A DNA stretch of 64,000 nt from Vitrella brassicaformis CCMP3155. Lineage: Eukaryota > Protista > Chromerida. Location of the stretch: positions 1 through 64,000 of the forward strand of contig CDMY01000450.1 of assembly GCA_001179505.1 (NCBI GenBank), written 5' to 3'. The notes under the pieces are model-generated. The model saw only the letters and a program-made list of their open reading frames with translations, searched no databases and was not told the origin of the DNA. A program made the translations under genes and the position numbers. Position 1 is the stretch's first letter; each line of letters starts with the position of its first letter. Shown here in pieces: positions 17,098-59,484 of this stretch.

Positions 17098-18872
17098 CTA
17101 GTTGATGCCGAGTGGCTTGAAGAGGCCGATGTCGTTGACCCACCCCAACTGACCCCAACCGAACTGACAGTCGTCATTCCCCAGGTGGGTGTTGAAGCCC
17201 TTGACCACACCAGTCAGCCCATAGCGGGCCGCCTCGACCAGCCGCGCCCGATGCACCACCTCGCGCAGACCCACCCGCCGCACACGAGGCCCCTCTCTGA
17301 CGGCGAAGCACTGGAGGGGCACCCGCACCACCCGGCCGCCCACATTGGCCATGCCGCCGATGACCTCCTCATTGCCGGCCGTCTTGGTCGCCGCGCACTT
17401 GACGAAGTGCTGCATGGCCCTCTTGATGCGGTGGGCCACCACTGGCTGCCCGAGGGTGATGGTGTCGACGGCCTCTGGCTCGTGCAGGAAGGCACCGATC
17501 TTCCAGGCCACCTGGGCCGTCGCATCCGTGAGGGCAAATGGGGAGGGGGCAGCAGGGGCATGTGCTGCAGCAGCAGTGGATGTGTCAGTGGGGGTGGTGG
17601 GCGGGGCGGGGCGGGCGAGGGGCAGCAGCCACGTCAGCATGTTGGCGGCGTCACGCTGTGGGCAAAGGGCGCCGTTGACGCCGTCCATGACGGCCTGGGG
17701 CAGCTCGTCGTTGAGGACGGTGAGGTACTCGGCCAACACCACACCGTGGGCCTCTCGTGACTCCTGGCGAGCATTGGCCGGCAGCTGTTGTGGGGTTTGG
17801 ACCATGTCGATGGCAGCCCCGATGTCAGCAGTGCGCGGATGGCCCGCTGCATCCCGCTGACCGTCTCATCACGCTGCTCGGACCGGGCCTGACGCTGCCA
17901 GACGGCGACCTTGATGGCAGCGATGCCCAAAGGCGTCTGGTGGGCGCCGAAAGGCCAGTGAGCTGTAGCTGTGTTGATGTGTGCGGGGCTGAGGTGCTGG
18001 CACAGCCACTCGATCACGTGATACGGAGACGTGACTGCTGCTCGCTGAAGGGGCTGAAACATCGGCTGCTGCTGTGGGGCCGTGAGGCTGGCGCCGTTGT
18101 CCATCATTAGCTGGAGGTAGCCGTGGATGAAGGCTCGCGAATATACGCGGCCCACACTGGCTGCACGAAGGATAACACTCCAGTCACCATCTGCCGCTGC
18201 CTCGGTGGCGAGGCAGGGGTTGAGCTTGACGAGGTGCTTGTAGATGGCCATCAGGGCCGCCTCATACTGCTCAGTCACGCGCACCCCACCTGGCAGTAAA
18301 GCCACCTGCCGCCCTTGCAGAGCCGCTCCGTTGGCCACGAGGGTCTTGAGCGCCGTCAGGTTGGCCGCACGCACCGCCACTCTGATGGGCTTGGGCTTGA
18401 GCCAGTCCGTGGAGATCCGCGCAGCAGGTGCTGGTGACGTGGGTGGCTCATTGAGCCCGACGCCCTCCTGGATGAGAGCCGACAGGACGCCCGTTTGCGT
18501 CTCACGCGATGGCCAGAGCGGCAGCACCAGCCGTCCACCGATCGCGAGCCACACCGCGGCGCATTCGAGCGCCGTGGGAGTGCTCCAGTCGTCGATGGCC
18601 AGCGTCAGCAGACAGACACGCCGCCGATACGCGGCATCACTCCGCGAGGTGATGAGGTCAATGCAGACCCGTGGGTCGGCCCCCTTGCGGACGAGCTGTC
18701 GGATGCCGTCAGGTGTGATTGTGCGTCGCATGATGCCCTGGACGAGCCGCTTGGTGGCATTGCTGGTGTTGGGCGGGAACAGTGCCTCCACCTTCTCTAT
18801 CTTCACCTCCTGCTGCTGCGGCTGCGGGTGTGGCTGCTGTGGTTGCTGTCCGGCTGATGATGAAGCCGACAT
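17098..18872 (-). pseudogene. Ankyrin-like expanded-family gene, copy 1; -1 frameshift at 17817-17820 (real lesion or assembly error)
   Basis: ORFs 17634..18890 and 17098..17805 together align to intact copy 2; sense strand reads TCGGGGCTGCC where copy 3 has TCGGGGGCAGCC. Confidence 0.85.
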
Positions 18873-19509
18873 GATGATCAAATCCTGCACACAGCAGAAC
18901 CACGCACAACGCTCAGACTTGGTTTAAGGTGTTGTGCTGCGCTGCTGTACCGCAGAATTGGGCACTGACGAATGGCTCCTCAGATGCCGTCACCCTGAGC
19001 CGAGTCAGTCACCCCAGTGAGGTGAGCTGCACACAAGCAGCTCGAGATGTTCGGCAGCCCTCGGTCGCTTCCTTTGCGGCCCTGCGTACCTGATCGATCT
19101 ACTGTGAGAGCTCGGTGCTTACTTCTCCTCGGAGCGCCACGAACGGCAACAATGCTGCCTGCAGGAAAACACAGAGGTAGATGCATACCATGGCCAGATC
19201 TGCATCTTAATCTCTTTCCCTACCAGAGATCTACGGTAGTGTAGGTTTCCGCCCTCCCCTCCCATGTCCGTGTTGCAGGTTAGGGTGCTCTGTGAAACCG
19301 CTACCCTTTCTCTTTTCTTGAGGTCAAGCTCGCAATCGCTGTGCGTACGCGGTTTCTTCTCCCCTTCCTCCTCTCCTCTCCCGAGCACGAGTGCGTCATC
19401 TGTTCCATATCGGTGCGTTTTCTCAGCCGTTTTCCAGCCTGGTGGGCACAGGCCAGGTCACGCACAGGCCAGGAACCAGACAGAGAGGGGGGGGGGGGGG
19501 GGGGGGGGG

Positions 19510-19809
19510 NNNNNNNNNNNNNNNNNNNNNNNNNNNNNNNNNNNNNNNNNNNNNNNNNNNNNNNNNNNNNNNNNNNNNNNNNNNNNNNNNNNNNNNNNNN
19601 NNNNNNNNNNNNNNNNNNNNNNNNNNNNNNNNNNNNNNNNNNNNNNNNNNNNNNNNNNNNNNNNNNNNNNNNNNNNNNNNNNNNNNNNNNNNNNNNNNNN
19701 NNNNNNNNNNNNNNNNNNNNNNNNNNNNNNNNNNNNNNNNNNNNNNNNNNNNNNNNNNNNNNNNNNNNNNNNNNNNNNNNNNNNNNNNNNNNNNNNNNNN
19801 NNNNNNNNN
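19510..19809. other. Assembly gap (300 N) flanked by poly-G runs
   Basis: N run; G-tracts at 19487-19509 and 19810-19819. Confidence 0.99.
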
Positions 19810-19916
19810 GGGGGGGGGGCGGAGGGCAGGAAAGGCGGCGAATGAAGTCGAGTGAAATCGTGTGCACCGTTGTAGATTTCCTGCCTGCCTGCAGGTGACA
19901 TTGGATTGTGGTCAGG

Positions 19917-20718
19917 ATGGTGATGAACCACTACGAGCGACTCGGCATCTCGAAGGATGCCACGAAGGAGCAAATCAGGAAGGCCTACTACAGCAAGAGC
20001 AAGAAGGTACGCCGCACCGTGCTGCCAAATGGCCTGTGCAGTGGCCACTCCTTCCCTCTGGCTGGCTTGGTGTTGCAGACACACCCTGACAAGGGCGGCA
20101 CGAAAGAGGCCTTTCAGAAGGTGAACGAGGCTCATGAGGTCCTCTCGAATGCCAAGAAGCGCCGCCAATATGATCTCACACGTACGGAGCACCCAAATGA
20201 CACTCTTCCACTCTGCCACTCTGTGTGTGTGGGGGGTGTCCTGCATGTGCTGGTGTCCTCTCAGTCGCTGGTGGCGTTCGGAAGACCACAACGAAGAAAA
20301 CAACCAAGAGCACATCGTCGCGGTCGAGCGCCAATGGTGCTTCGCGCGCCTCTCGACCGACCAACAATGAAAGCAACACCCACATGGGCTTCGGGAAGTA
20401 CTTCGACCGCACATACGCCTGGGTTGAACGGTACGCATGATAACATGAAAACAACACCACTGAAGGGACATGGCTCTCCTCTCCGCCTGTGTCAGAAACG
20501 CTCCTGGCTACGTCGACTACGTTCTTCGTCAGGGCCGCTCCCGCTACAACATAGCGGCCTACAACCGATCCTACGAGTACTGCAAAGGCAAGTACGGGGC
20601 GGCGGCCGCCCCCCGATACACCTACAGGTACAACTTCGGCTACGGATACGGCTATGGCGGCTTCTTCGATGTCATGGGGGATTGGGGCGATGACGGGTAC
20701 GATTACTTCCCGTGGTAA
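19917..20718 (+). CDS. J-domain (DnaJ type C) protein with small MGFGKY motif and Tyr/Gly-rich tail, 4 exons
   Basis: NHYERLGISKDATKEQIRKAYYSKSKK|THPDKGGTKEAFQKVNEAHEVLSNAKKRRQYD with intact HPD; splices in frame to MGFGKYFDRTYAWVER|NAPGYVDYVL..YDYFPW*. Confidence 0.88.
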
Positions 20719-20759
20719 CCGCGTTTTCTGATGAGGTCTGGCATGGGGTCAGTGGTGGG

Positions 20760-21116
20760 CGAATGAGCGAGTGGGTGGGGATAAGAAATGCGCGCAGAGT
20801 TGCGTGCAGATGTCGCATAGAATGCATTTTTGCACTGTCATTCGTAGCCGATTGGCTGGCTGTCTTGTGGCCTACCCGTCCGTCTGTCCATATGTCTGCG
20901 GGTGGATGTGAGTGCATAGTGTATGGCGTGAGATAACACTGTTGTTCTCTATCGTTTTCTCCGTCGTTTTCCCCTTCCTACACACAGTCAGCCACCGTGA
21001 ATGAGCGAGTCGAGATAAGAAATGCGCGCAGAGTTGCGTGCAGGTGGGGGAGGAGTGGGTGGGTGGGTATCTGCATGGCCCGAGTGCAGCCGTATGCAGC
21101 CGATTGGCTGGCTGGT
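20760..21116. repeat. Local direct duplication of a ~110 bp non-coding segment
   Basis: ATGAGCGAGT..GATAAGAAATGCGCGCAGAGTTGCGTGCAG..AGCCGATTGGCTGGCTG occurs at ~20762-20862 and ~21001-21114. Confidence 0.85.
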
Positions 21117-21619
21117 GTATGTCCGTCAGCAGCAAAGTGGTCAGTCAGTCGTATGCACCAACCACCCGTGTGTGTCTTGTGTGTACAAATATGTGTTTAC
21201 TTTGTGTGTGGGACCCTCTCTCTTCGAAGTAAACTCTCTCGAAATAAACCGGGATGACACCGAAAACACAGATGGCCCAGGATGACACGAATGCAGGGCG
21301 TGTCACCGCTGCACACACGACACCGATCCTTCTATGAATACATCAACACGCAGTCATCCGTGTGGGTGAGGAAGACGTCACCTACTGACACACACAACCA
21401 ACAGTCAGGCGCTCCTCGCCCACTGCCTCTCTACATAACTACAGGCTGGCAGACAATCACTCACATACACACATAGACGAACACGGCCTCTTTGACATGG
21501 TCCCTTCACATGCACACTCTCCCTAGGCACCCCACTGTAACCACCAGAATCGACTCTACCTGCCTAAGCTTCCCATCTCTCCCTCCCCTCTCTACATCAT
21601 CATGGTGGCCGTCAGCCGG

Positions 21620-23383
21620 CTAGTTGATGCCCAGCGGCTGGAAGAGGCCGATGTCGTTGACCCACCCCAATTGCCCCCAACCGAACTGACAGTCGTCGTT
21701 GCCCAGGTGGGTGTTGAAGCCCTTGACCACACCAGTCAGCCCATACCGGGCCGCCTCGTCCAGCCGAGCCCGATGCACCACCTCGCGCAGACCCACCCGC
21801 CGCACAGTCGGCCCCTCTGTGACGGCGAAGCACTGGAGGGGCACCCGCACCACCTGGCTGCCCACATTGGCCATGCCGCCGATGACCTCCTCATTGCCGG
21901 CCGTCTTCGTCGCCGCGCACTTGACGAAGTGCTGCATGGCCCTCTTGATGCGGTGGGCCACCACGGCCTGCCCGAGGGTGATGGTGTCGACGGCCTCTGG
22001 CTCGTGCAGGAAGGCACCGATCTCCCAGGCCACCTGGGCCGTCGCATCCGTGAGGGCAAATGGGGAGGGGGCAGCGGGGGCATGTGCTGCAGCAGCAGTG
22101 GATGTGTCAGTGGAGGTGGTGGGTGGGGCGGGGCGGGCAAGGGGCAGCAGGCGCGTCAGCATGTTGGCGGCGTCTCGCTGTGGAGAGAGGGCGCCGTTGA
22201 CGCCGTCCATGACGGCCTGGGGCAGCTCGTCGTTGAGGACGGTGAGGTACTCGGCCAACACCACACCGTGAGCATCTCGAGCCGCCTGGTTGACGTTGGG
22301 CCGCAGCTGCTGGGCAGTCTGCACCATGTCGATGGCTGCGGCCGACGTCAGCAGTGTGCGGATGGCCCGCTGCATCCCGCTGACCGTCTCGTCACGCGGC
22401 ACAAAGGGATTCTCCTCCTCACCATCATCATCTTGGCTGCGCAAGTCGGTGACCCTCATGGCAGCCATCTCCAAGGCCCTCTGGTGGACTCCTCTCCTTG
22501 CTGTGGTGTTGATCTGGGTGGGGCTGAGGTGCTGGCAGAGCCACTCGATCACGTGATACGACGAAGAGAACGCTGCTCGATACAGGGGCTGAAACATCGC
22601 CGGCTGCTGTGTGAGGCTGGCGCCGTTGTCTTTCATCAGCTGCAGATAGCTGCGGATGAACTTGTCCGAGTAGATGGGGCCCACACAGGCGGCCGAATGG
22701 ATGACATTCCAGTCACCATTTGTTGGCTCGGTGGCGAGGGAGGGGTCGAGCTCGACGAGGTAGGTGTAGATGGCCATCAGGGCCGCCTCATACTGCTCGC
22801 TGGTGCGCACCTCACATGGCAGGGAGGCCAGCTGCCGCCCCAGAGAAGGTGCTCCGTTGGCCACGAGGGTCTTGACGGCCGTCAGGTTGTCTGCCCGCAC
22901 CGCCACCGTGATGGGAGCGATAGCTCGAGAGCGTCGTGGCGGTGGCGTGGGTGGCCCACTGAGCCCGACGCCCTCCTGGATGAGAGCCGATAGGACGGCC
23001 GCCTGCACCTCACGCGATGGCCAGAGCGGCAGCACGAGCCGTGCTCCTGGGCATAGCTCGGCTTCGAGCGCCGTGGGAGTGCTCCAGTCGTCGATGGCCA
23101 CTGACAGCAGACACACTCGCAGCCGAAACTCCTCCTCATCATCACCCCACGTGGTGATGAAGTCAATGCACACGGCAGGGTCGGCCCCGTCGCGGACGAG
23201 CCGCCGGATGTCGTCAGGTGTGATTGTGCGTCGCATGATGCCCTCGATGAACCGCTTGGTGGCATTGCTGGTGCCGCCGGGGACACGGATCTTCACCTTC
23301 TGGATCTTCATCTCCTGCTGCTGCTGCTGCGGCTGCGGGTGTGGCTGCTGTGGTTGCTGTCCGGCTGATGATGAAGCCGACAT
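21620..23383 (-). CDS. Ankyrin-like expanded-family gene, copy 2; intact, intronless CDS
   Basis: Uninterrupted ORF from MSASSSAGQQPQQ to ..GWGQLGWVNDIGLFQPLGIN*; ankyrin-like helices (RRLVRDGADP, VIHSAACVG..LQLMKDNGASL, LYRAAFSSSYHVIEWL). Confidence 0.9.
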   Translation of the reverse strand: MSASSSAGQQPQQPHPQPQQQQQEMKIQKVKIRVPGGTSNATKRFIEGIMRRTITPDDIRRLVRDGADPAVCIDFITTWGDDEEEFRLRVCLLSVAIDDWSTPTALEAELCPGARLVLPLWPSREVQAAVLSALIQEGVGLSGPPTPPPRRSRAIAPITVAVRADNLTAVKTLVANGAPSLGRQLASLPCEVRTSEQYEAALMAIYTYLVELDPSLATEPTNGDWNVIHSAACVGPIYSDKFIRSYLQLMKDNGASLTQQPAMFQPLYRAAFSSSYHVIEWLCQHLSPTQINTTARRGVHQRALEMAAMRVTDLRSQDDDGEEENPFVPRDETVSGMQRAIRTLLTSAAAIDMVQTAQQLRPNVNQAARDAHGVVLAEYLTVLNDELPQAVMDGVNGALSPQRDAANMLTRLLPLARPAPPTTSTDTSTAAAAHAPAAPSPFALTDATAQVAWEIGAFLHEPEAVDTITLGQAVVAHRIKRAMQHFVKCAATKTAGNEEVIGGMANVGSQVVRVPLQCFAVTEGPTVRRVGLREVVHRARLDEAARYGLTGVVKGFNTHLGNDDCQFGWGQLGWVNDIGLFQPLGIN

Positions 23384-23612
23384 GATGATCAGATCCTGCA
23401 CACAGCAGAACCACGCCCAACGCTCAAAGGCGGAAAGTGACTTCCGTGCAGCAACGAGGGTGTCAGCCACTTACGTCGGGATCTTCGTCACTGTTGTGCT
23501 AATAGAAAGCGAAACTCGGCTGGACGCACACGAACAAGGCCCTTCGTGTCCGCGTCGTCCACATCATTTCGTGGTCCTTTGCGTTGGTACCTAATTTTAA
23601 TATTCCGCAAAA

Positions 23613-23633
23613 GCAGGGTTTGGGTTGTAGGGT
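23613..23633. promoter_or_regulatory. Telomere-like bipartite motif GCAGGGTTT-GGGT-TGTAGGGT upstream of family copy 2
   Basis: Near-identical to 61722-61741 and to the reverse complement of 59866-59889. Confidence 0.55.
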
Positions 23634-24208
23634 ATGGTTTCGTTTGCACACTGTACGGAATCGCTGCGAGAGGCGCGAGGAGAAAGGCTGCAGGCAGGGC
23701 CCTAAGGATGGCTGTGGGGTCCTGAGGCTGGCCGGAGGGAGGAGATGAACACACAGGTCCACCTCAGGGGCCATTATTGACCACCACTGAGAGAGCGAGA
23801 CGCCTCGGAGGATTCGAAGCGGGCGGCGGAGACCAAGATGGAGCTATAAGGAGGGTGATTGTCTTCTCTTCCCCTCTCCCTCCCTCTCTGTCGTGAGTAG
23901 CCTCGTCAACGCGACCACTGTCCTCTCTGTGTCCGTCCTTCGTGCCGATCGCAGCCTTCCTTGTTGACAAGGAGGCACCCACCCATCTCCGCCCAGACCA
24001 AGACAGACAGCAAGAAGCTGCCAGTCCATCATCTTTTTCCCACCCCTTCTTTCTTACTTGGGTCGTCATCATCTGCTGCCGCTGGCTGATCCGACATCGT
24101 CACGTCATGCGTCGTTACTGCTGCTGACGGCAAGGGTGTGGTTGATTGTAATTGGTCCGACCATCTATCTATCCTATATTATCAGCGAGAAGGGGCCATG
24201 CTCCTAGA

Positions 24209-27133
24209 ATGCCTTCCCCCACGGCGAGAGTAGGGAGAAAGCGACCATACGACGCGATCCGAAGCCTGATATCGCTCCCTACAGCCTCGTGCATCGCCGC
24301 CACCCCGCCCAGCACCTCGCCGACCCACCTGCCCGGCACGCCGTCGTTCAACTCGTCCACCGTGCACATGATGGACGCGTCCTTCTGCTTCCCTGCCGCC
24401 GATGTCATGGACTGGTCGGCAGGCGAGGGCGAGGCGGAGGGGGAAGGACGAGAGGGAGAAGGAGAGGTGGGCAAGGAGGGGCAGGCAGCGTCGCCCATGC
24501 ATCTCGATAGGAGGACTGCGAGGAGGGTCACATTCCAAGCAGAGGCCGTCAAAGTATCACCAGGTAACGAAATGAGTGAGTGCAGAGGAGGGGAGGGGGA
24601 GGGAGTGTCGCTTCATTCGTATCACTTTTTAATCACCACTTTTCTTCCTCCCTCTGCGTGTGTCGTGTGTTTTTGTCATGTGTGCTGTCTGTCATGTCAG
24701 AGGATGGTTGTGTTGATGACGTGACGTCAGTGTCGATCGAGAAGGCGATGGAGGGTCTCACCAGCACTCTGCCCGTCTGCCTCACGTCCGGCGGCATCTT
24801 CCACATGGGCGAGGTCGACCCCCCACCATCCGTATCCCACTCACACCAAACAGACAAGCCCTGTGGCAAGAAGACGCGCCCCCTCATGCCCCCAGCCCCC
24901 CCACCCACCCCCGCACCCACACCAACAGTCAGGTCCGACTCGCGGAACAACACCCCCACGGCATCACACGCCACCCAAGGCCCTCAGCCGTCCTCATCGG
25001 TGCCCACCACTGCCCCCCCATCAGTTACTCACACGGCCGAAAGGCCGCCGGCGTCAGCTCGGGAGAAGGAGAGGCCGCCAGCAAGGGCGCCGGCTGCGTC
25101 GCGGTTCTCCCAGGCGCTGAGGGGGTTGGCGCTGCCGCATGGGCGGAGCGGGACGACTGTGTCGACGTATGACACGCAGACGGCCACTGAGGACAGCGGC
25201 AGGAAGGCGAACACGTCGAGGGAGAGGGCAGAGGGCGACGGGCCGGCCGGCCAGCAGAGGAAGGGCAACAGTCTGTTCGGCCGCGGACAGAAGGGTGGTG
25301 CGGCGCATGCAAATGGCAGTGCGGCGAGGGGTGTCTTGTCACCTGGAGGTGGTGGCGGCGGTGGCCATGGTGAGGGCACGAGCCGGCTGGCGATGGCGCT
25401 GTCGTTCAAGTGGGGCAAGCTCCACTTCGCCCAGACCAACAAGAGCAAGGAGCCGCACAAGAGCGCCGAGGTCGTCAAGGACACATGCCAGCCCCCCCAT
25501 CAGCATCAGCATCATCTGGAGAAGGATGCCTCCATCCCTCCCCTGTCCCCACCTGTTGGCCCCAGCCCAAGTGCGTCACCCGAGCTGCCCACATCCCCCC
25601 CCTCCCCGTCCGTGTGCGCAGCAGAAGGCGGCAGCACCAAGAACAGCAAGGCCGCCAACCACGTGCCGTCGTCGCCGGCCTTCCCCGGCTGCACCAGCAG
25701 CTGCTGTGGCTGCTCGCCCCCACAGATCCTCGGGCAGCTGGGGGGGCACCCCGATCCAGCGACAGAGAGCCAGACCAACAGCAATCAGACGCAGTGGATG
25801 TCCCCAGAGCGGCAGGGTGGCACCATTGCGGCGTATGTCAATCACGGTGGTCCTGCTGCCGCACCTGATGCCGCCGATGCCGTCCGTAACGAGACGGGCG
25901 GCGATCAGGAGAGGGAGGGGCATGGCGAGGGCATGGTGGGGGACACGGACATGAGGGACGAGGAGGGCAGGGGGGACGGCATGTGCGAGGACCACCACCC
26001 CCCCCACACACACCAGCCGCCGTCACTCCAGCTGCCGATCCCATCATCGCAACCAGTCGAGGGGGAGGAGACCTCCGGTGCCGTGGAGGCCGACGCAGAG
26101 GAGGGCGATGTGTGCGACGACCACTTCGAGAAGGAGGCGTGGATGGCCAACCTGCAGAGCATCCTCGTCACCCGGGAGCAGCTCATGGGCCTGTTGCGGG
26201 ACGTCCCTCTGGAGGTGCTGCAGGGCCAGCCCCCATCCATGCCCTCAGCCACGCCCACGTCACAACCCGCCTCCACCCCACACCAAGGCAGCAGCGCCAC
26301 GGCGGGCCCTTTCCCCCCCTCACCAGACACCATCCCCTCACCCCTCCTCGACCCACCCACAGACCAAGACAACGACACCGAGGTTGCGCGGGCAGACCCC
26401 TCACACGCATGTTGGCGGGCAGGCGACCGCACGAGCCAGTCGGCGGGCCAGCCGGCTACCAGCGACGAGGGCGGCAAGGGCGCCGGTGGGTGTGGGGAGG
26501 TCGAGACGGCCGTGCGTGGCGCGATCGGCCGTCTGTGTCGCGACTACGTGTGTCTGCTATTCCATTCGCTGAGCGTCAAGGTGGTGGTGGCCAAACCCGA
26601 GACAGAGACCATTCCCCTCCCCGCCCCCACGAGCACCATCAGCAGCAACAGCGAGGACACTGCCATGCGCAGCCCGTCGTCGACCAACAAGGCGAGCCAG
26701 TCCCCGGCAAAAGGGCAGGGGAAGGTCTATGCGCTGGCCGTCAGCCAGGGCTCCTACTGGGGCCCGCCCTACCAGCTCGACGGTGGGTGGCGGGGGGTCA
26801 TCAGGGGGCCGGGCTTCGAGGAGCGCTTCACCACCATGTCGCTGCGGCTGCGAATTTTGGCGGTGCCCCCGAGCGGCAGTGGCGTCAAGCTCCCGCTGCA
26901 TGGCGTGTCGACTCAGCCTGTCGAGAGGTGTGACCTGGAGACTGCCTACCGGACCTGGCGGCTGCAGGGGAGCCCGCCGCGGGAGCTGGCCCCGCAGCAG
27001 CTCAACAGGAGGAGGGCGGCTTTCACGGCACTACAGCGGTTCGCCAAGGACCTGCAGGAGGTTCAGAGACAGGTGGGTGCGGGAGGGACGAAATTGAGGA
27101 GGGCAATACACGCACATCACACGTGATTCATTT

Positions 27134-27171
<38 letters not shown>

Positions 27172-27527
27172 GTGTGTGTGTGTGTCAGCTGCCAACTCTT
27201 CGTTTCGGTGACGCTGAGACAGAGGCAGCGTTCGGTGGGCCTGGAAGTTTGGCCTACACGGAGGTGGGGGGGCTGCTCAAGGCCATGCAGAAGCACCTCT
27301 ACACCGCATTCACGCACCTGCGGCCACACGCAGCCACGGACCAGCACGCCCACCCCCACACAAACCCCCACAGCCACCAACAGCAGCAGACCGACGCAGA
27401 CATGGCCGTGAGCAGCAAAGGTGGCGCCGAGGACATGATGACGGACGTGCAGACGCAGGCCGACTCCCACTCGAGCAGCAGCGCGTCACTCGTGCAGGAG
27501 GGGGACGGGAGGGAGGGCGGTATGTGA
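24209..27527 (+). CDS. Large, mostly disordered hypothetical protein with RVxF motif, 3 exons
   Basis: Exons 24209-24563, 24701-~27080 and 27189-27527 join in frame at GT-AG sites; ~800-codon open central exon; RRTARRVTF motif. Confidence 0.65.
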
Positions 27528-27529
27528 GC

Positions 27530-31700: not shown

Positions 31701-31763
31701 TCAGTCCCTCACGTACAAAAGTCAGTACATCCACCAGACGACACAAACTCAGCTGTCGGTCTT

Positions 31764-40641: not shown

Positions 40642-40740
40642 GTAAGCAGATGAGATGCGCACAGCAACACGAAAGATTTGGGGGGGAGATTATTTGGAAT
40701 GTGTTGTGACTTCGTGTGTGCCTGTGAGTGTCCGATGCAG

Positions 40741-42274: not shown

Positions 42275-42741
42275 AAATTCATGTCTTTGTGGGCCCGGTA
42301 CATGATGGCTGCTTAATGGGAGACACACGACGGATACACCCACGAGCAATGGGAAACACTGACGTGCCACGATGCAATGCGCTGAGCGGACAGAGACGTC
42401 TTTTCGTTGAGCAATGAAGACCACTATCCCACTTCACTCACACACGTGTTCGCTAACAGCCATCGTCCTCACACCCGAGCACACCCTCCTGGCTCCATCC
42501 ATCCAGCCAGCCAGCCAGCCAGCGGCGGAGATATTTGTGTGCACTTTCAACAGATATAAAATGCAGGCAACGATCATTTGGTGACGAAGGATTCTCTGGC
42601 CTTTACGCTCGGTGGTCTGCAGTCAAGCCACAAATTCACAGCCACAAATTCACAGCGGGGCGGTGTCTTCCCTTCCCTCTTCATTGCCAGTAGATTGCTG
42701 CTGCTGGCCGGGGGCTGCGGGTGTCATGCCGGGAGGAGCCG

Positions 42742-48425: not shown

Positions 48426-48999
48426 CCTGTAGTCCGCTGGCAGCCCCAGGCGCCGACACAGAGCTACTCAACAGCGATCAAAGTCTCTTGACACGTCGAG
48501 CGATGTGTTGTCCTGCGTGTGGAAGAGGGATGTGTTGTTGTGGCAGATCTTCAGCGCGCCTCACATAAGCTCGCATATTTCGGATCGCGAGGGGGAAAAA
48601 CACTCCCAGGTTCTCAGCGTTCAAGCGGCGTGAACAGCTCAGTCGACGCACAAGAAGAAGATTTCAGCCTCCATTGCACCCGCATATGGTGCATGAATTC
48701 ATCGCGAGAGGTGCGGAGTTCCAGCGATGGTGTTTCATGGCCTCATGGTTGTGGAGCGGTCTTCATCGCGCCTGCTCTCCCAATGTGCCGTCACGCCAAG
48801 ATTCGGGCTGCCCATGGCGGGCAAGTCGGAGGAATGTGCACGAGAGGGTGATGATGCAGATGCCGCCGGCGAGGACCCTTTCATGTTTGCTTTGAGGCTA
48901 TCGGGACGGCTGCAGCTTCTCATCCACTCTGGTAAGCCGAGAGAAGGAAGATCCATACCGAAGTGACGTTGCAACCCATCTTCGTCTTTGCTCTCAGGT

Positions 49000-50438
49000 G
49001 TGTCGTCACTTCAGCTATCTTCGACGGTCACGGTGAACATCGTCGGCCTCGACATCACCCACTCACCCGATCCGCCCCACACAGCGGCGACCACCACCAC
49101 CCCAACAGAGGACTCATCTCCCCTCGTCGTCCTCATCTTCGCCCATCCGACCTTCCCCCTGTCAGTGGCTCTCGCCATCAGCAGGGCGTATGTGCAGCAG
49201 TACGGGAGGGTGAAGCATCTGGATGGAGGGCAGGACGGGGGTGAAAGCGAGAGGGGACAGCCTGTGGCATTGCGGTGGCGTGGGGCTCCCCCGAAGGACC
49301 ATGTGATGGAGCATGTTGTCAGGCAGGTGAGTGGAGGAGGGGTGGGGAGTCAACATGTACATCCATCTGTCTGTCTATCACGTCATTGGCAGAGTCGGAA
49401 TGTGTTCCTCTCCTGGATGCATCGGCAAGCGGCATTGCTTACCCAGCCGCCGACGTCCCCTCTTCCCTCGATGCTCCTCTTTGCCCTTCCCCCATCCAGC
49501 CTCCCAACCGCCCCATCCGTCCCGCCAACATCACGGAGATCCCCCCTTCGCTGCCTCTGCTGCCTTCCATTGTCCGTATGTGGCTGTCGTCGGCGGCGGG
49601 AGGCGAAAGAGAAGGTGCCCGAGACGAGAGAAGAGGAGCGGCATGTTTGGGTGAGGCGGTCGGACTCGGCGGACTTGTCACCTGTACCGCCTGGCCTGAC
49701 ACAGCAGTGGACAGAGGCCTTGATGGCTGAGCGGACTGGTGATGGCCCCTGGACCACTCATGCCGTCCTTCAGCCAGCAGCAACAGCAAAGGAGGCACCT
49801 TCGGCAGCCACCGTCCAATCACAGGGCCAGGAGAAAGCTGGCGATCGCACCAAGCAAGCCAAGAGGCGGCCATCGTGGTCGAGCTGGCTGTCCGTCGTGC
49901 CGTCGGCGAAGGCCAAGAAGGCGCAGCGAAGGAGGCCACGCAAGAGGTCGGCAAAGGTGTCTTCGGTAGTGGTTGACGGCCATGATGCTGGCGAGGTCGA
50001 TGGTGGTGCCGATGCTGAGGCGCCTGCACCACGGGTGGTGTGGGGGGATGGGGCTGGTGACGAGACCGCAGCAGTCGAGAACAAGCGCCCTGCGGCAGTG
50101 AGGCTGCGCGTGGTCGGCATGAACAGGTGAGAGACCAGACAGATGGAGGGCACGAGCATCTGAATGCACTTGGCTTGGCTTTTGTTGTATGCATGTCTGG
50201 ATGCAGTGTTGCCATCGCCGTACCAGAGCCTGATCATTCAGGGGCAGACCTTGGTGCGCTGAAAGAAGACTCCGCTGTGATGGAGCTGACGACCAGCGTG
50301 CCAGGGGATGGCAGCGACGAGCAGAAAAGACATAGGGGCGGTCGGTGTGTGTCTGTGGAGTGCATGGCGCTGGCTCTGCGGCCTGCTCTAGAGGTGTGGG
50401 ATGCCTTCGAGAGGCAGATGGGCGTGACGTGTACATAG
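49000..50438 (+). CDS. Hypothetical protein, multi-exon; 5' end uncertain
   Basis: Protein-like segments (VNIVGLDIT..PLVVLIFAHPTFPLSVALAISRAYVQQYG; AVRLRVVGMNR|; ALALRPALEVWDAFERQMGVTCT*) separated by GT-AG introns. Confidence 0.5.
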
Positions 50439-50571
50439 AGGTGGACAGGCAGGGCCCGAGACACTAGTGCCGGTTGTGTACAGACAAACTCATTCACTCA
50501 TGTGATGTGAATGAATGGGGTTGAGACCAACCGATGAGTGGACAAGTCTCACAGCAATGTCGCTGACAAGG

Positions 50572-52172
50572 TCAAGCATTCCCTCGGATTCTGGTGCAGG
50601 CGAGAGAAGACCCTTCATCAAAATACAAAATGTAGGCAGGGATCGGATCGCACGAACATGTATGCGCATCTGAATTGATGTCTCTGCCAATTATGAAATG
50701 TAGGCAGCCCTCCACCGGCTGCGTCGACTCCTCCTCCCCCTGAAGCTGCACCTGCTGCTCCTGCTGCACCGAGGCGGCGGGCAGCGGGGCCAGGCCAGCG
50801 AAACGCGACCCTGCACAGCACACACAGAACAGACAGAGGCAGGACCTTCTTCCTTCCCTCGCTTCCTCTCTCTATCCGTGTGTATATCAATGGGTATATA
50901 TATGTATCACCGCTGGTCCACTGGCGACCTTGAGACTCCTCAGACACCTTGGCTGCAAACGCAATGCATCAATGTGTGGGTCAACACGTGAGGGCAGGTG
51001 TTCGTATCTTCCTCCTTACCGTCCTCCCATGGAGCACGCTGCTCAGCCGACAACTGAGACACACCTACAGACAGACAGACAGACAGAAAAGTGTAGTTGG
51101 ACGAGAGTGACAGGTGTGCCATTCCATTCGATCCATCCATCACCCTTGTCCTTCTCCATGGGAAGTCCCTGCACACGCACGACACGACACGACTGCAGTG
51201 AATTTTCTGGGGCGCTGTGTGTTGGCTAACGCACCATGAAGATGATGTTTTCTTTGGCCTCTGTGCTCTTGGACTGGATGACATCCGCCACGTCCAACGC
51301 CGTGGCCTGACAACATGAGAGGGCCATACGTACACATTCAGGCACGCTCCACACTCTCCCCGTGTCTCTTTCCAAGCTCACCGCTTGATCGAACGAGAAT
51401 GTCTCCTGGGTGCCGCCATGCGTGTCAATGAGTATCGACCTGAACGGCACGCACAGAAAGTGTGAGAGCTGCATTACCCTTGAACACACTTACGTGTGAG
51501 CTAGCGTGAGTGTTTCGATGCCTGCGTAGTCGAAGTTGAGCAGCAAAACTGACAAACAGAAGAAGAGAGGACGAACATGAAGTAGATGAGTTATGTGGGG
51601 CGCGTTTGTGTCAGCTCACTCTCCTCGCCCTCCTCGCCCAGTGTGACGAACTTGATGGCCGACGCCGTGGCGATGAGACAACCCTGGGCAGACACACAGA
51701 TGGAAGTGGCTATCACGTCCTCTCCTTTCCCCTGCCTGGATGACGTCGCCGGTGTGAGTGAGGATACCAACTCCGAAGAAACGCACATCCCTGCGGAAGG
51801 AATGTCGACGTATCATCATCATGTCTCTGTGCATTCCATGTGTTTATGTGTGTGGATGCCCACCCGTTGGCTGACGAGGAGGAGGGCTGGCCTTGCGACG
51901 ACTCGAGGGCGCCCATCGACAGATTCGCACCTAAAAACAACGCAGCGCCAGCCATTTCAGCATTCCCGCCGCCTTCGCCACTGCACACACTCACCAGCGA
52001 TGGCCAGGTTCTCGAACTTGCCCGAGATGGACCCTTTGCCACACACAGAGGTAGGATCCATCCATCCATCCATCCATGCGGTGTGAGTACCTTCCTCAGC
52101 GGGATCCACAGCACCAGTCGCCTTCCCCTCCACGGTGGGCTGATCCTGCGCCGCACCAGCCTTGTCCATCAT
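50572..52172 (-). CDS. Hypothetical protein, multi-exon; possibly PH/GRAM-like fold (weak)
   Basis: Exons MMDKAGAAQ..EE|GSISGKFENLAIA|GANLSMG..ANG|DVRFFGVGILTHTGDVIQ..GCLIATASAIKFV..SILIDTHGGTQETFSFDQAVSLE; 3' end uncertain. Confidence 0.45.
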
Positions 52173-52394
52173 AGCTCCTTCTTCTCTTCCTGCCGTACAA
52201 ACGATGGTTCTGGCCGATCGCATCGGTGCGAGCTTGTTTGGCGAGGCTGCTGACGGGAAAGAGCCATCGTCTGCCACGTCCAACGACCCACGTTGCAGCC
52301 GTATAGATCTCTGGTAGGTGACCGAATGCAGCTTCAATATGGGACAATGATGGACGAATGGCTCTGTCGTATGCAGATCTCTCAGGGAGGGCCA

Positions 52395-54288
52395 ATGGCG
52401 CATCCCCCCCACTCCTACCACGTGTCCTTCTCGCCGGCGTTCGGCCAGACGAGCCACGAGCTGGTGCTGCTGGAGCTGACAGACGACATCCAGAGGAGCC
52501 TCGAGGAGGGCAGGGACGTCTTCATCAAGGGCGACCCTGCGGCTGATGGCGATGCCGTCCTCTGCACTGACGACAAGACCTACGAGCTGCGCATCAACGA
52601 GACCTCCAACCCCAAATTCCTCGCCGTCCCCTGTGAGCCACCCCCCGGCCCGATCCCTCCCACCGTGCCCCAGGCCGACTGCACTGAGACACTCCCCATG
52701 GCCAGCGGCACCACCCCGATGGACGTAGACCCGCCTCAGGGCGCCGCGGCTGCAGCTGCAGGGGCTGAGGAGGCGCAGAAGGGCGATGGTGATGGTGGCG
52801 TGGAGGAGCGGGGCCTGATCATCATGTCGAAGTGCCTGTCGGAGATCTCGCCCATCCCGACGGTCCCTCGCGTGACGCAAGTAGGAAGGGTGCTGCAGCA
52901 GATCAAGTTGCAGGGGCAGCAGCTGGACGAGGGTGACCAGGAGGGCCGTGCTCGTCTCCGACGGCGCAGCACGACGGCAGCGCTGGCGTATGACGTGCAG
53001 GCGTCGCGGAGTCAGCTGGAGGCCTACCTGGCGGCGCAGAACAACTTGGTGGAGATCGAGGGTGAGTGGCGTGTCATCGATGAGGACCACGTGTACAGCA
53101 CCATCGACCTGACACTCAGCCATGTGACCGCGGGGCGGTTCCCGGCCGATGCCATCCCTCTTCACGACCTGTGTGACGCCCTCAAAGACACCGATGACGA
53201 CACACAAGGGGCCGACAAGGGTACCCGGCCGCACACTAGCATACGACAGCACAAATATGAATGCGCCACGTGCTTGTGCTTTCCTTTCCCTGTGCAGGTC
53301 AGTTTGACACATCGCCGGAGGTCGTGCACAAGATCCTGACGCCCTACCTGATCCCTCCCCCCCTCCTCCAGCCCCCCTCCAGCAACCCCACACTGGCCCT
53401 CGACCGCACCCAGGTGCAGCGCTTCATCGGCCTGAACGTCCTCTACACCAACAAGAAGTCAGGCGAGGAGCACCTGACCACAGAGGCCTTCAAGCAGCGT
53501 TGGAGGCAGAAGATGGGGCCGTGGACCAACGAGCAGCAGCAGGAGGGTGCTTCGCGTGGAGGGGGAGGTGGGGTGGCGACGAGCCCGTCGGGGTGGAGTC
53601 AGGGTCGCAGTAGCGGTAGCATAGAGCGTGATGGAGCGGATTGGGAGGGACTGCCGATCGATCTGCTGAGCGGGCAGTATTACCTGCTGTTCGAGGAGCA
53701 GCAGCTGCCGGTGGTGGTCTACATGGACGAGAAAGCCCTAGCCATCGACCCCAAACAGCGACTCCAGGTAGGTATGATTGGCTCGCCAAGAGAGGGCGGG
53801 ACGATGCGATGAGGGAGGGGGAATGTGTACAGGCAATTGATTGGTTCATTCATTAGTCCCTCCCTGTCTGTCTGTGTGTCTGTGTGTGTGATGTGCGCTC
53901 GTCTTCAGGCGATGATAGACGTCAAGTCGGTGTGGACGCGGCGCGAGCTGCATGGGTACCTGTCGCCCGTCCTTCCGCCGCACACCAAACTCGACTCATT
54001 CATCATGGACAACACACGAGTAAGAGGCCAAGAGAGAGCAACGTGCGTGCAACACACCAACACCCCGGCGTCCGTCCCTGCCTCTCCCTCCCTGTGTGTA
54101 TATGTCAGCCGACTGACATCACGGTTGTGTTGCGTGAGGAGAAGGACGAGGCCGGCAACTCGGTGCAGGAGACGGTGGTGGTCAAGGCCTACACGAGCAA
54201 GCTGCTGACCAAGAGGGACATGGACGCACGCAAGAAGGCCCTCGCCGAGAGCCGCAAGGCACGCGAGCAGGAGTATCTATACTCCTGA
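52395..54288 (+). CDS. DCC1: Sister chromatid cohesion protein DCC1 (Ctf18-RFC subunit), multi-exon
   Basis: LVLLELTDDIQRSLEEGRDVFIKGD..DAVLCTDDKTYELRINETSN; IEGEWRVID; LAIDPKQRLQ|AMIDVKSVWTRRELHGYL. Confidence 0.87.
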
Positions 54289-54732
54289 ATGTGTAGCTAT
54301 AGTGGGTGGGGTAGGTGCCTCATTCACATATGATGTGCATAGCATAGCGAGAGAGAGAGATGCATCCCAAGTAGGTGTGTGTTGTGCGGACTCGTACGTG
54401 AGTGTCGGTTTACATTACGGGTCCTTGAGTTGACATGGTCCTCGAGAGTGTAAAGTCTGTGCTGCTCGTGAGGGAAGCAAGCCATGCAGACACGCAGACG
54501 CAACACGCCAGCGGCCGAGCCGATCCTCCATGTGCAAGCACAATCAGAGAAGCACGGCAACGAACACGAGATACAAACATGGTCGCGCACATCCAGTCTG
54601 CCTGGGCTTTATCGACAATCTATGCATGCTACGCACTCCTCGACCACAGAGCATGCCAGCGGAAGAAAGGAAGTCAGTCAACACTGGGGATCAGGGGGGG
54701 AGCACACCGAGAAAGAGGCGGACTAGGCGGAC

Positions 54733-54791
54733 TCAGATCTTGGCCTTGTAGACCTTCTGGATCATCTCGGGGCTCATCTTGATCAGCTTCT

Positions 54792-54823
<32 letters not shown>

Positions 54824-55375
54824 CACACACTCTGATGTGATGCCCACATGCCGTCCGTCTTTCCACTTATCTCTCTCTCCCTGCTCGCTCACCTGCTTGG
54901 CTTTCTTGTGCCACTTGCGGATCTTGCTGCTGTCCTTGATGACCTGCACCGCGCCCTTGCCCAGCGCCTTGACCTCATTCTCGGCCTTGCGCTTCTCCTT
55001 CTCCTTGCGCTTCTCCGCCACCTTCTTCCGCCTGTCGGCCCGCTGCTGCTTCATCTCCCGCTCGAACGCCTTCATGTCGTCCTTCTTGCGCTTGGCCGCC
55101 CGCCGGTCCTCATAGGACTGCTGCCGATGCGCAAAGTTGGCCGCCATCTTCTTGCTCGCCCGCTGCCGCACCTCAGCGTGGTCGTGCTTCCAGACTCTGC
55201 CGCTGCGTGGCCGGCCGATCTTGGCCCTCTCTGCTCCAGCCGGCTTGGTCTTCTTCTGGATGTCTTTCTTGACTCTCTTGATGGCTCGGTCCTCTGGTGT
55301 TTTCTTGGTCGCTGACGCCGTTGAGGGCGGCGCCTCTGCCTCCATAGGAGTGGGACCATCGCTTGGTGACGCCAT
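54733..55375 (-). CDS. CCDC86: CCDC86/Cgr1-like nucleolar coiled-coil protein, 2 exons
   Basis: GRPRSGRVWK, highly basic coiled coil, KRKAENEVKA..VQVIKDSSKIRKWHKKAKQ|KLIKM. Confidence 0.85.
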
Positions 55376-55615
55376 TGCCGGCAGGCACGACAGAAGGGGA
55401 TAGATGTGACCACTTTTCTTGCTCTAATGTCAGGGATGGTCCTCAGAGTGCTCCACAAGTCCTCAGATCACTCCCAAGCCCTCCAAGGGAAGGAAGCTCG
55501 CAGATGTGCGAGCTTGGGCTTGAGCTTGCAGATCTCCCCCTGGGCGCACTCTACGCTGTAGAATTTTCTCTATTTGGTTTCTCAACAGGTATTTCGGCAA
55601 TCGTCGCCTCAGCTA

Positions 55616-57313
55616 ATGGATTCGGAAGGGAGTTTTGCCACCAAGAGCATCCATGCCGGCTCCAAGCCTCGCGTGAACCACTCCATGGTCTGTCCCATCT
55701 TCCAGAGGTGAGCACACGGCTGCAGCAAGACACCCATGCATAGATCTGCACAGATCATTCATCGTGTGGGTCTGTCTGCTTCCAGCGCCACTTATGAGCA
55801 ACCGTCGCTGGATCAGAGATACGAGGACATCAAGTACCTGCGGCTCAACAACAGCCCCACACACGAGCACCTGGATGCCAAGATCGGCCAGCTGGAGAAT
55901 GGAACGGCCTTGGTCCTCAGCTCGGGTATGGAAGATACGACCGGCACTCACTGAAGTGTATGTGGTGCTGTCTGCCTCAGGTATGGCGGCCATTACGACG
56001 TCGCTGCTGGCTTTGTGCTCGTCGGGGGATCACATCCTGATGCAGGACCCTTGCTATGGCGCATCAACTGTTTTCGCCACTCACGACTTGACCAGGTTTG
56101 GCATGGACGTCACCTTCTTCAACAGCTTCGACGTCCAGAGGTGGGTACACACGCAATCAAGCTGCTCGCGAATTGACAGGCCACTGCTCGCTTCCCCCTC
56201 CTTGCCGTCCGTCAGTATCGATGAGGTGCTGTCGCTGCTGCGGCCCTCCACCCGGGTGATCTACGTCGAGTCGATCGCCAACCCCCTCACGCGCATCCCC
56301 AACATGCCGGTCATCATCGAGGCGGCAAAGCTGTTCGGCGAGCGGCACGGCACACGCATCATCACCATGATCGACAACACCTTCGCCACGCCCTACAACT
56401 TCCGCCCGCTGGACTGCGGAATCGACGTGGTGCTCCACTCGGGCACCAAATACTTGAACGGCCATTCCGACATCTGTGCAGGTACACCAATCACATCGAT
56501 GGCATGTGGGATGGATGGAGGGAAGGGCGATCGTCATTTCCTTTTCTCTATCTTACTTACTGCTGCGTGCCGTGCAGGTGTGGTTGTGGTGCGCGACAAG
56601 TCTCTGATGGAGAAGATACAGACCATGGCGACACACCTCGGGCCGTGCCTTGACCCCAACTCGTGCTTCCTTCTCGACCGAGGCCTCAAGACCCTCCCAC
56701 TCCGCATCCAGCAGCACAATGACAACGCCCTCCGACTCGCACAGTTCCTCGAGAGCCATCAATCCGTTGCGAGAGTCAACTATCCAGGTCGGCCACACCC
56801 ACACACAACCATGCCTCCTCTATCGCTCCCTCATCTGTGTGTGCAGGCCTCGAGAGCCACAAGGACCACGCCAGGGCCCTGTCGCTCTTCACTCCGCACC
56901 AAAGTCATCACGGCAAGGTCACCGACGGCACGGCCAATGGCACAGACGGCCATGGGTCATCCGTAGGGTGCGGCGGCATGCTGTCGTTCGAGCTGGCCAG
57001 CGCATCCCTCGAAGCAGCTGGGAGATTCGTTTACGCGTTGCAAGTGGCGACGATGGCGCCGTCTCTGGGGTCTGTCGAGACACTTGTGACCATCCCTGCA
57101 CGATCTTCGCATGCCGGTGCGGTGAGGGGGTGAAAGCCGGGAGGAAGGAAGTTCTCGCGCCCTCTGTCTTATGTGCGTGTGTCATATGCAGGCCTGTCTG
57201 CTGAGGAGCGTCAGCGAGCGGGTGTGTCGGAGTCGCTCATCAGGGTCTCGGTCGGATTGGAAGGCATCGAGGACCTCATCGAGGACTTTCAGACGGCGCT
57301 CAAGCAAGTGTAG
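55616..57313 (+). CDS. PLP-dependent Cys/Met metabolism enzyme (cystathionine gamma-lyase/methionine gamma-lyase family), multi-exon
   Basis: FATKSIHAG, PIFQ|SATY, YLRLNNSPT, SSGMAAI, YVESIANP, IDNTFATP, HSGTKYLNGHSD (PLP lysine), GGMLSF, SLGSVETL, LIRVSVGLEGIEDLIEDF. Confidence 0.93.
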
Positions 57314-57847
57314 GTCGCCGGTGGAATGGACGAATCGGTGGAGGGAGGGGTGTTTGGCCAAGAGGGCCAAACGCGCGAGATATTTGAGTTTTTGCTGTTG
57401 CCATGCTGCGTTTTGTTTGGTCAATCCATGTGTGTGCATTGCATGATTGATGAATGGCGAGACGTGTTTGTCTGTGTGTGGACGGACGGCTGACACGGCG
57501 CCGTGTGGACAAATGATTCAACCATCGTGGCCGGTGCGTCCAATGCGACTAATCAAATCACACACACACGCACACACGCGCGCGCACGCACACAGACATA
57601 CGAATGCTTTCACACCAGTCGGCGGCCGACTGACAGGCAAATGTCAGTTGAGCGGTATCTGCACACATCGCTGACCCATCCCATAGCCGCGCTAACACAC
57701 CCAACTAGCCAGACAGACTAAGGCAGCACCATCTCGCGTCATCACACCTACGCAGCACTTGACAACCACTGCCCCTGTCTAGTCATCCTGTCTCCCCCTC
57801 CCACCCGCGCGCCCTCCCTGCTGGGTCGTCGTGGGGTCCTCGGCCGG

Positions 57848-59484
57848 CTAGTTGATGCCCAGCGGCTGGAAGAGGCCGATGTCGTTGACCCACCCCAGCT
57901 GACCCCAACCGAACTGACAGTCGTCGTTGCCCAGGTGGCTGTTGAAGCCCTTGACCACACCAGTCAGCCCATATCGGGCCGCCTCGTCCAGCCGAGCCCG
58001 ATGCACCACCTCACGCAGACCCACCCGCCGCACAGTCGGCCCCTCTCTGACGGCGAAGCACTGGAGGGGCACCCGCACCACCCGGCCGCCCACATTGGCC
58101 ATGCCGCCGATGACCTCCTCATTGTCGGCCGTCTTGGTCGCCGCGCACTTGACGAAGCGCTGCATGGCCCTCTTGATGCGGTGGGCCACCACGGGCTGCC
58201 CGAGGGTGATGGTGTCAACGGCCTCTGGCTCGTGGAGGAAGGCACCGATCTTCCAGGCCACCTGGGCCGTCGCATCCGTGAGGGCAAATGGGGAGGGGGC
58301 AGCGGGGGCATGTGCTGCAGCAGCAGTGGATGTGTCAGTGGCGGTGGTGGGTGGGGCGGGGCGGGCGAGGGGCAGCAGGCGCGTCAGCACGCTGGCGGCG
58401 TCTCGCTGGGGATTGAGGGCGCCGTTGACGCCGTCCATGACGGCCTTGGGCAGCTTGTCGTTGAGGACGGTGAGGTACTCGGCCAACACCACACTGTGCG
58501 CATCTCGAGCTTGCTGCCTGGCGTCGGGTGGCAGCTGCTGTGGAGTCCGCACCATGGCGATGGCTGCCCCCGATGTCAGGAGTGTGCGGATGGCCCGCTG
58601 CATCCCGCTGACCGTCGCATCACGCGGCACTAAGGGATCCTCCTCACCATCATCTTGGCTGCGCAACTCGGCGACCCTCCTGGCAGCGATGCCCAAAGGC
58701 GTCCGGTGGAAGCGAAAGGGCCATGGATCTGTGGCTGTTTTGATCTGTGCGGGGCTGAGATGCTGACACAGCCACTCGATCACGTGATAGGACGAGTTGC
58801 GTGCCGCCTCCGGCAGGACCGCCGACTCGTCGATGCTGGCGCCGTTGTCCATCATCAGCTGCAGGTAGCCGTGGATGAAGCCCTCCGAGTAGGTGCGGCC
58901 AACCATGGCTGCACGATGGATGACATTGCTGCCAACAATTGCCTCGTTGGCGAGGGAGGGGTCGAGCTTGACGAGGTAGGTGTAGATGCCCATCATGGCC
59001 GCCTCGTACTGTTCGCTGGAACGCACCCCCCGTCGCAGGAAGGCCAGCTTCCGCCCTCTCAGATCCGCCCCGCTGGCCACGAGGATCTTGACGGCCGTCA
59101 GGTTGGCCACAGCGGCAGCACCAGCCGTCCAGCGTCCGTGCCCGGCAACCCGATGCCTAGGGGGGCTTCGAGCGCCGTGGGAGTGCTCCAGTCGTCGATG
59201 GCCAATGACAGCAGACACACTCGCAGCCAACGCTCGTAGCGCTCGTGACCAGAGGTCCAGGTGGTGATGAGGTCAATGCACACTCGTGGGTCGGCCCCCT
59301 TGCGAATGAGCCGCTGGATGCCGTCAGGTGTGATTGTGCGTCGCAGGATGCCCTGGACGAGCCGCTTGGTGGCCGCATTGGTGCCGGGCGGGAAGCGGAC
59401 CTTCACATTCTCTATCACATACGGCTGCTGCTGTGGCTGCTGTGGTTGCTGTGGTTGCTGTCCGGCTGGTGATGAAGCGGACAT
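57848..59484 (-). pseudogene. Ankyrin-like expanded-family gene, copy 3; frameshifting internal deletion (148 bp relative to copy 1)
   Basis: N-terminal ORF ends ..RLVLPLWPT*; the rest is in another frame; the segment between two TGGCC sites present in copy 1 (18362, 18510) is collapsed to one TGGCC at 59104-59108. Confidence 0.88.

Follow-up and report, generated by a model that had tools for sequence, protein, structure and literature searches.

An expanded ankyrin-repeat gene family with a common orphan C-terminal module in Vitrella brassicaformis

Three related genes on the minus strand of contig CDMY01000450.1 of Vitrella brassicaformis CCMP3155 raise the question of what kind of family joins a variable ankyrin-like core to an almost uniform C-terminus, and of how that uniformity arises. 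The window analysed here covers positions 1 to 64,000 of the contig (64,000 nucleotides). An initial annotation had described these genes as a three-copy, intronless and rapidly diversifying family, possibly of ubiquitin adaptors. The three homologous units, copy 1 (17098-18872), copy 2 (21620-23383) and copy 3 (57848-59484), were recovered by a six-frame listing of open reading frames (ORFs) and by self-comparison of the window, and the variable peptides quoted in that annotation are present in the ORF translations. They are probably one intact and two damaged members of a large, Vitrella-specific and modular ankyrin family with an orphan tail that evolves by birth and death; the descriptive part of this explanation can be held with high confidence, while a modular adaptor mechanism is about evenly balanced. 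In that mechanism, the diversifying ankyrin surface would bind varied partners, and the common tail would couple the heads to one shared partner or activity, by docking or possibly by catalysis. Gene conversion in the concerted 3' half keeps the tail alike within subfamilies.

Modular architecture of the window genes

Copy 2 (minus strand) is the sole intact copy, with one coding exon of 587 aa in the ORF list, an ATG at 23383 and a TAG stop codon at 21620-21622; its exact protein sequence had no match in the public protein collection searched, and it served as the top row of the family alignments A1-A3. Copy 1 (minus strand) lacks one nucleotide of a G run at ~17818/17819, as shown by a three-way DNA alignment of the copies. 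This 1-nt deletion breaks the gene, leaving two ORFs (17098-17805 and 17634-18890) that overlap but are read in different frames. This lesion marks either a pseudogene or a homopolymer sequencing error. Copy 3 (minus strand) carries a frameshifting deletion at 59110/59111, of 148 nt relative to copy 1 and 130 nt relative to copy 2, which takes out parts of ankyrin repeats 2-3 and leaves the ORFs 57848-59230 and 59098-59586 in different frames; it is likely a pseudogene. The public models of these two copies skip 17764-17855 as a 92-nt "intron", with loss of conserved codons (CEM13960.1, copy 1), and 59033-59109 as a 77-nt "intron" (CEM13978.1, copy 3). Since both stretches align to coding sequence of the intact copy, these introns were judged artificial. 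As a practical point, the public models of two of the three copies thus mask lesions. In the searches described below, the broken copies were neither joined nor repaired, and their pieces were searched separately.

The ankyrin head of copy 2 (22334-23272, minus strand; residues ~38-350) contains about seven repeats, two of them with insertions. Copy 2 by itself gave sub-threshold ankyrin matches only, while Pfam Ank_2 was matched by all 22 aligned members at E <= 0.1 (best E 1.8e-11; copy 2, E 0.041), and the family profile matched ankyrins and designed ankyrin repeat proteins (DARPins) at E 1e-29. The AlphaFold2 (AF2) head model had a predicted local distance difference test score (pLDDT) mostly >85 to about residue 290 and 60-94 thereafter, and a Foldseek search with this model returned DARPin, AnkB and FEM1 at probability 1.00. 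The ankyrin-like core suggested initially is therefore a real ankyrin-repeat domain by profile match, AF2 model and Foldseek, with the stacked helix-turn-helix solenoid fold. Inspection by eye revealed no signal-peptide-like hydrophobic stretch at the N-termini. Most members start with Met-Ala or Met-Ser and two members of the main subfamily with Met-Gly; a divergently oriented paralogue on contig C262 (locus ~2790, minus strand; L033) begins Met-Gly-Cys, a dual acylation-type motif.

The head is followed in copy 2 by a C-terminal orphan module (21623-22288, minus strand; residues 366-587, 222 aa). The first full-length fold left this tail unmodelled (pLDDT ~30), and a deeper, tail-only alignment of 51 sequences then gave a model with a pLDDT of 85 and a predicted template modelling score (pTM) of 0.81. 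Its layout consists of a 49-residue helix, a disordered linker rich in P, A and T, more helices, a four-strand meander, a further helix and two short strands. The fold check proposed in the initial annotation (HHpred/AlphaFold of the C-terminal module) thus returned an alpha/beta domain without an F-box-like match. Moreover, Pfam models had no match in any of the 51 tails at E <= 10, and the tail had no match among PDB sequences, among PDB structures searched with Foldseek, in the ESM Atlas (TM <= 0.37), among predicted viral structures (BFVD) or among look-alikes proposed by a protein language model. Bacterial defence or effector families were considered as relatives and rejected, with their matches representing ankyrin-driven noise only. 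When eight longer members with a clear tail match were scanned in Pfam, six showed ankyrin only and two no family, and no further domain was detected. The tail is thus a candidate new domain family, with no relative in the 1.84 billion representative proteins or the structure libraries searched. In the main subfamily, the "disordered" tail linker is almost identical between paralogues (alignment A1, columns 550-590); there it is rich in His, Pro and Ser and hints at a short functional motif, which is absent from the subfamily of the window.

Family size and distribution

Genomic copies were collected, as had been suggested, with the copy 2 protein and the tail profile from the V. brassicaformis CCMP3155 genome (72,700,666 bp, 1064 scaffolds; PMC4501334). 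The copy 2 protein gave 77 full-length-type matches, mostly at ~40% identity over the full length and in open frames of ~570-630 aa, and the tail profile gave at least 168 matches at E <= 1e-5, a lower bound, as 150 of 294 candidates were scored. The description as a three-copy family was therefore wrong by two orders of magnitude. Counting all of the at least 168 places, broken copies included, the family could make up perhaps 0.7% of the 22,817 genes of Vitrella (PMC4501334). Tail matches are dispersed over many contigs and form tandem arrays on C295, C200, C571 and C336. A stop lies within the match in 9 of the 150 tail matches listed, most of which sit in open frames of 500-750 aa, and stops or frameshifts affect roughly one in five matches genome-wide. 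New copies thus arise by duplication, both in tandem and at dispersed sites, and others are lost through frameshifts and deletions.

When the 1.84 billion representative proteins were scanned in full with HMMER, the tail profile matched 67 clusters. The 20 that were looked up were all Vitrella, a Vitrella-type transcript or an ENA contig close to Vitrella, with no relative outside Vitrella among them; the other 47 were not looked up. Based on these searches, the family appears to be restricted to V. brassicaformis. The ENA metagenome protein P0076 has diverged from the other members but does belong to the family (hhalign 98.8%, full-length alignment), and its contig (ENA ERZ893784, k147_3441252) is 90% identical over 3.6 kb to Vitrella contig C425, indicating that P0076 derives from a close Vitrella relative. 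Contig k147_3441252 of ERZ893784 also shows that an environmental sample contains a second Vitrella-like genotype. P0076 belongs to a divergent subfamily, of which more copies occur on C482, C363 and C453. A literature search found no description of this ankyrin-tail family, and the phrase "ankyrin repeat" is not used in the Vitrella genome paper, as judged by term count (PMC4501334).

Gene conversion in the 3' half

The near-invariance of the tail noted initially holds in part: the tail is the more conserved part family-wide, while its uniformity in the window reflects largely gene conversion rather than deep constraint. Divergence is not uniform along the protein, with the last ~220 codons 92-96% identical in DNA between the window copies compared with ~78% in the repeat core. 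Synonymous divergence (dS) was 0.07-0.13 in the tail versus 0.30-0.42 in the repeat core, and the ratio of nonsynonymous to synonymous divergence (omega) was 0.27-0.52 and 0.53-0.77, respectively. Silent-site divergence falls 3- to 5-fold at one common breakpoint at window position 22270. This shared recombination or conversion breakpoint (22268-22272, minus strand) lies at codon 372 of copy 2 and corresponds to ~17748 in copy 1 and ~58498 in copy 3. A maximum chi-square analysis of third codon positions placed it identically in all three pairs (permutation p <= 0.002), with third-position mismatch falling across it from 0.22-0.24 to 0.04-0.08.

The comparison of subfamilies leads to the same conclusion. 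DNA distances in the tail were 0.04-0.09 within the subfamily of the window (copies 1-3, C255 and C236) and 0.21-0.26 to its sister subfamily (C248a, C248b and C262), while those in the head were 0.16-0.28 and 0.24-0.37, respectively. A constant ratio of rates between the two segments cannot produce this pattern, which therefore indicates concerted evolution of the 3' half. In addition, copy 3 and the C236 copy were paired in the head tree with 100% bootstrap and were not paired in the tail tree. As is characteristic of a concertedly evolving family, dS and trees differ between segments, and distances are disproportionate across subfamilies. Gene conversion within subfamilies thus homogenises the 3' half, which comprises the tail and, in the case of copies 1 and 2, also the 3' flank, and it is due to this conversion that the tail looks near-invariant in the window. 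Across the wider family the contrast is milder: the median tail-to-head dS ratio was 0.62 over 231 pairs of intact paralogues, mean column identity among full-length copies was 67% in the tail and 52% over the whole protein, and tail identity dropped to 44% across the 51 sequences.

Selection on the ankyrin head and tail

Parsimony counts on a codon tree of 22 sequences gave an omega of 0.50 in the tail and 0.71 in the head, revealing that purifying selection acts on the tail and, to some extent, on the head. For a finer view of the head, binding positions were defined as those randomised in DARPins (positions 2, 3, 5, 13, 14 and 33), with the repeats anchored on the TPLH-like motif. These canonical binding positions had an omega of 1.12 (N 410, S 109), compared with 0.65 at the other head sites (Fisher p 2.5e-10) and 0.49 at the TPLH-AA framework. 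The binding set slid by 1-4 residues gave 0.61-0.93, and 2000 random 30-site sets gave a mean of 0.71 with a 99th percentile of 0.97. The excess at binding positions arises in repeats 3 and 5-7 (omega 1.13-1.6). Replacement at the canonical target-contact positions thus keeps pace with silent change or exceeds it, whereas the framework evolves under constraint. The site-wise test of dN/dS recommended in the initial annotation accordingly detected an excess at the binding positions as a set but, with low power, no single convincing site. The concentration of replacements at ankyrin binding positions fits the diversifying recognition family proposed initially, but an omega near 1 is not in itself proof of positive selection.

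A competing explanation is a decaying, weakly constrained family without diversified recognition, in which surface change would reflect relaxed constraint and the tail would be kept alike by conversion alone. The high overall omega of head and tail, the stops or frameshifts in two of the three window copies and in the genome at large, and the lack of any single strongly significant site would all fit such decay. Yet most of the 150 listed tail matches are open despite a dS of 0.2-0.4 between closer paralogues, selection acts on the TPLH-AA framework and on invariant tail residues, and the excess at binding positions is position-specific, being absent at neighbouring, similarly exposed positions. 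Decay is therefore a fairly unlikely account of the family.

Several points nevertheless count against a modular family with a diversifying head. Relaxed constraint would explain an omega near 1 on the surface equally well, the omega values come from parsimony counts on one tree for a family that recombines, and repeat positions were assigned by hand from the TPLH-like anchors. The tail model was built from 51 closely related sequences (effective number of sequences, Neff, ~2.8), and a known fold may have been missed. With two of the three window copies damaged, the locus provides at most one functional gene. Furthermore, transcripts of the window copies were not found in two metagenome scans, from which near-genome records were possibly excluded, making this result uninformative on expression.

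A bolder version holds that the family is an undescribed intracellular recognition repertoire of well above 100 genes, in which a diversifying ankyrin face is combined with a structurally new signalling or effector domain kept uniform by conversion. If true, it would be a counterpart of immune-type receptor families and might help the alga to deal with viruses, bacteria or the coral host. Such a repertoire is doubtful at present, and the more restrained reading of a modular family with an orphan tail is preferred.

Conserved residues of the tail

Residues invariant in the tail include Trp88, Asn132, Gly137, Cys153 and Glu178, and the invariant or near-invariant polar and charged set comprises Asn132, Cys153, Glu178, Arg38, Arg113, Arg168, Glu169 and Asp177, with Gln152 near-invariant. 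A Cys-His-His-Cys set (Cys153, His172, His194 and Cys200) is present in 39 of the 51 tails, and His172, His194 and Cys200 are lost jointly in one divergent subfamily. A zinc site formed by these four residues was considered as a hallmark of the domain and rejected, as it is missing from that whole subfamily. A papain- or transglutaminase-like catalytic core was likewise rejected: the best Atlas row, at a TM of 0.34, represents noise, and the Cys lies at a strand rather than at a helix start.

The conserved positions nevertheless bear on the possibility of an enzymatic tail of a new kind, such as a Cys-dependent hydrolase or transferase, which the ankyrin heads would aim at different substrates. 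The invariance of Cys153, Asn132 and Glu178, the near-invariance of Gln152, Arg168, Glu169 and Asp177, and the joint loss of three of the four Cys-His-His-Cys residues in one subfamily are consistent with such an activity. In contrast, the tail has no fold or sequence match to any enzyme, and its conserved charged residues may instead support the structure or make up an interface. An enzyme is improbable.

Gene structure and mode of spread

The genes had been called intronless in a window rich in interrupted genes. This is correct for the coding sequence, which is one exon, but the gene is probably spliced upstream, given that a transcript contig from the C262 paralogue maps to the genome as the large exon preceded by four short 5' exons, with a polypyrimidine-CAG acceptor 6 nt before the ATG. 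In copy 2, the conserved 5' flank (23384-23426, minus strand), at the end of which homology ceases, contains an acceptor-like TGTGCAG ~14 nt before the ATG. Equivalent flanks lie at 18873-18915 in copy 1 and 59485-59516 in copy 3, giving ~45 nt of upstream homology among the window copies, TGTGCAG included. This flank is probably the 3' end of an intron in the 5' untranslated region (UTR). On the other side, a 3' flank common to copies 1 and 2 (21482-21619; copy 1, 16956-17097; minus strand) is 84% identical by blastn and does not occur in copy 3. MMETSP-type transcripts document that family members are transcribed and spliced. The protein P0011 (transcript L031), an ankyrin head without the tail, may be a chimeric assembly and was used only for its 5' splice structure. 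On contig C255 (L002), which carries the closest paralogue on another contig, the first ~63 nt of the coding sequence lie ~390 nt upstream of the rest (1131-1197 and 1585-3321), representing an intron or an insertion within the coding region.

These features also bear on whether the genes are a selfish or foreign cassette, either the ORF of a transposable element or endogenised giant-virus ankyrin genes, spreading as a 2-kb unit. The high copy number on many contigs, the many damaged copies and the single coding exon within an intron-rich genome would suit a cassette. Against this, homology stops ~45 nt upstream, at the acceptor-like site, and within 140 nt downstream; no repeats flank copy 2 in the self-comparison of the window, which was not a search designed for inverted or long terminal repeats; many copies lie in tandem arrays; and the transcript of one paralogue carries four spliced exons at its 5' end. 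Furthermore, the members scanned contain no reverse transcriptase, integrase, transposase or viral hallmark domain, with ankyrin the only significant Pfam family, and the tail did not match a known transposase or enzyme domain, a match that the initial annotation had named as refuting its proposal. The tail also lacks a match among predicted viral structures, all 20 clusters looked up out of the 67 trace to Vitrella, and transposable elements in the Vitrella genome total only 1.5 Mb (PMC4501334), which likewise speaks against a mobile origin. A cassette is thus very improbable.

Ubiquitin adaptors and other known ankyrin systems

The proposal that these proteins are SCF-type ubiquitin ligase adaptors of the ANK plus F-box/PRANC kind, with a tail that binds Skp1 or Elongin C, can be set aside almost entirely: in its favour are the layout, in which an ankyrin head, a shorter conserved tail and a large expansion recall the ANK-PRANC proteins of poxviruses, Wolbachia and giant viruses as well as ASB and FEM1, and the presence of FEM1B and FEM1C among the Foldseek matches of the head, though solely via ankyrin repeats; against it, F-box, F-box-like and PRANC models (PF00646, PF12937 and PF09372) and SOCS-box, BTB and U-box models had no match in the 51 tails at E <= 10 or in full-length members, although PF12937 detects at least 15 F-boxes above cut-off at other Vitrella loci by the same kind of search, and hhalign of the tail profile against an alignment of Vitrella's own F-boxes gave a probability of 2.6%. 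An F-box or PRANC identity of the tail was rejected on the Pfam and hhalign results. The (V)AWKIGAFL helix, initially likened to an F-box, is one element of the larger 222-aa alpha/beta domain, not a 45-aa three-helix box.

The comparison with known systems is informative in a wider sense. ANK-PRANC/F-box proteins of poxviruses, Wolbachia, Rickettsia and giant viruses combine a variable ankyrin array with a conserved C-terminal module, and show lineage-specific expansions and frequent broken copies. The Vitrella family likewise has an N-terminal variable ankyrin array and a conserved C-terminal module, and is expanded with broken copies; in contrast, its 222-aa alpha/beta tail gives no F-box or PRANC signal, and its genes belong to the nuclear genome of a free-living alga, have spliced 5' UTRs and are not viral or bacterial effectors. 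The cullin-RING receptors ASB (ankyrin plus SOCS box) and FEM1 resemble it in an ankyrin substrate-binding head with a shared C-terminal docking element, and FEM1B and FEM1C are structural neighbours of the Vitrella head. Unlike in these receptors, no SOCS or VHL box was detected in the Vitrella family, it has about ten times as many copies, and its 3' halves evolve in concert. The Giardia "protein 21.1" family and the ankyrin expansions of Trichomonas and Symbiodiniaceae are multigene families shaped by birth and death plus gene conversion. They resemble the Vitrella family in comprising hundreds of lineage-specific protist ankyrin genes, but the Vitrella members examined (22 full-length members and six of the eight longer ones) all join an ankyrin head to the same non-ankyrin tail.

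Among free-living organisms, chromerids are the most closely related to apicomplexan parasites, which depend heavily on lineage-specific, recombining multigene families, and Vitrella is coral-associated. The Vitrella family shows how recombining multigene repertoires can emerge outside parasitism.

Other features of the window

Copies 1 and 2 are separated by an assembly gap (19510-19809, no strand assigned), identified by reading the sequence and by a listing of N runs. It is intergenic, lies within a poly-G tract that has copy 1 on one side and a DnaJ-like gene on the other, and is clear of all copies; its sole consequence for them is that the real spacing of copies 1 and 2 may differ from that in the assembly. 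In the interval 19488-19819, 22 G stand on one side of the gap and 10 G on the other, and the long poly-G tract probably broke the assembly here. The DnaJ-like gene between copies 1 and 2 is an ORF at 19908-20693 (plus strand) with a J-domain-like start, in which the motif near HPD appears to be interrupted, probably by an intron.

Long ORFs also run antisense to all three copies on the plus strand (16870-17760, 21602-22993 and 57935-58633), and were taken as by-products of GC-rich codon usage rather than genes. The ATG of copy 3 stands head to head with the start of a serine hydroxymethyltransferase gene, 430 nt away (59484-59914), which occupies 59914-61563 on the plus strand as a single ORF of 549 aa. 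This arrangement leaves little space upstream of copy 3 for 5' exons of the paralogue type, which fits copy 3 as a dead copy.

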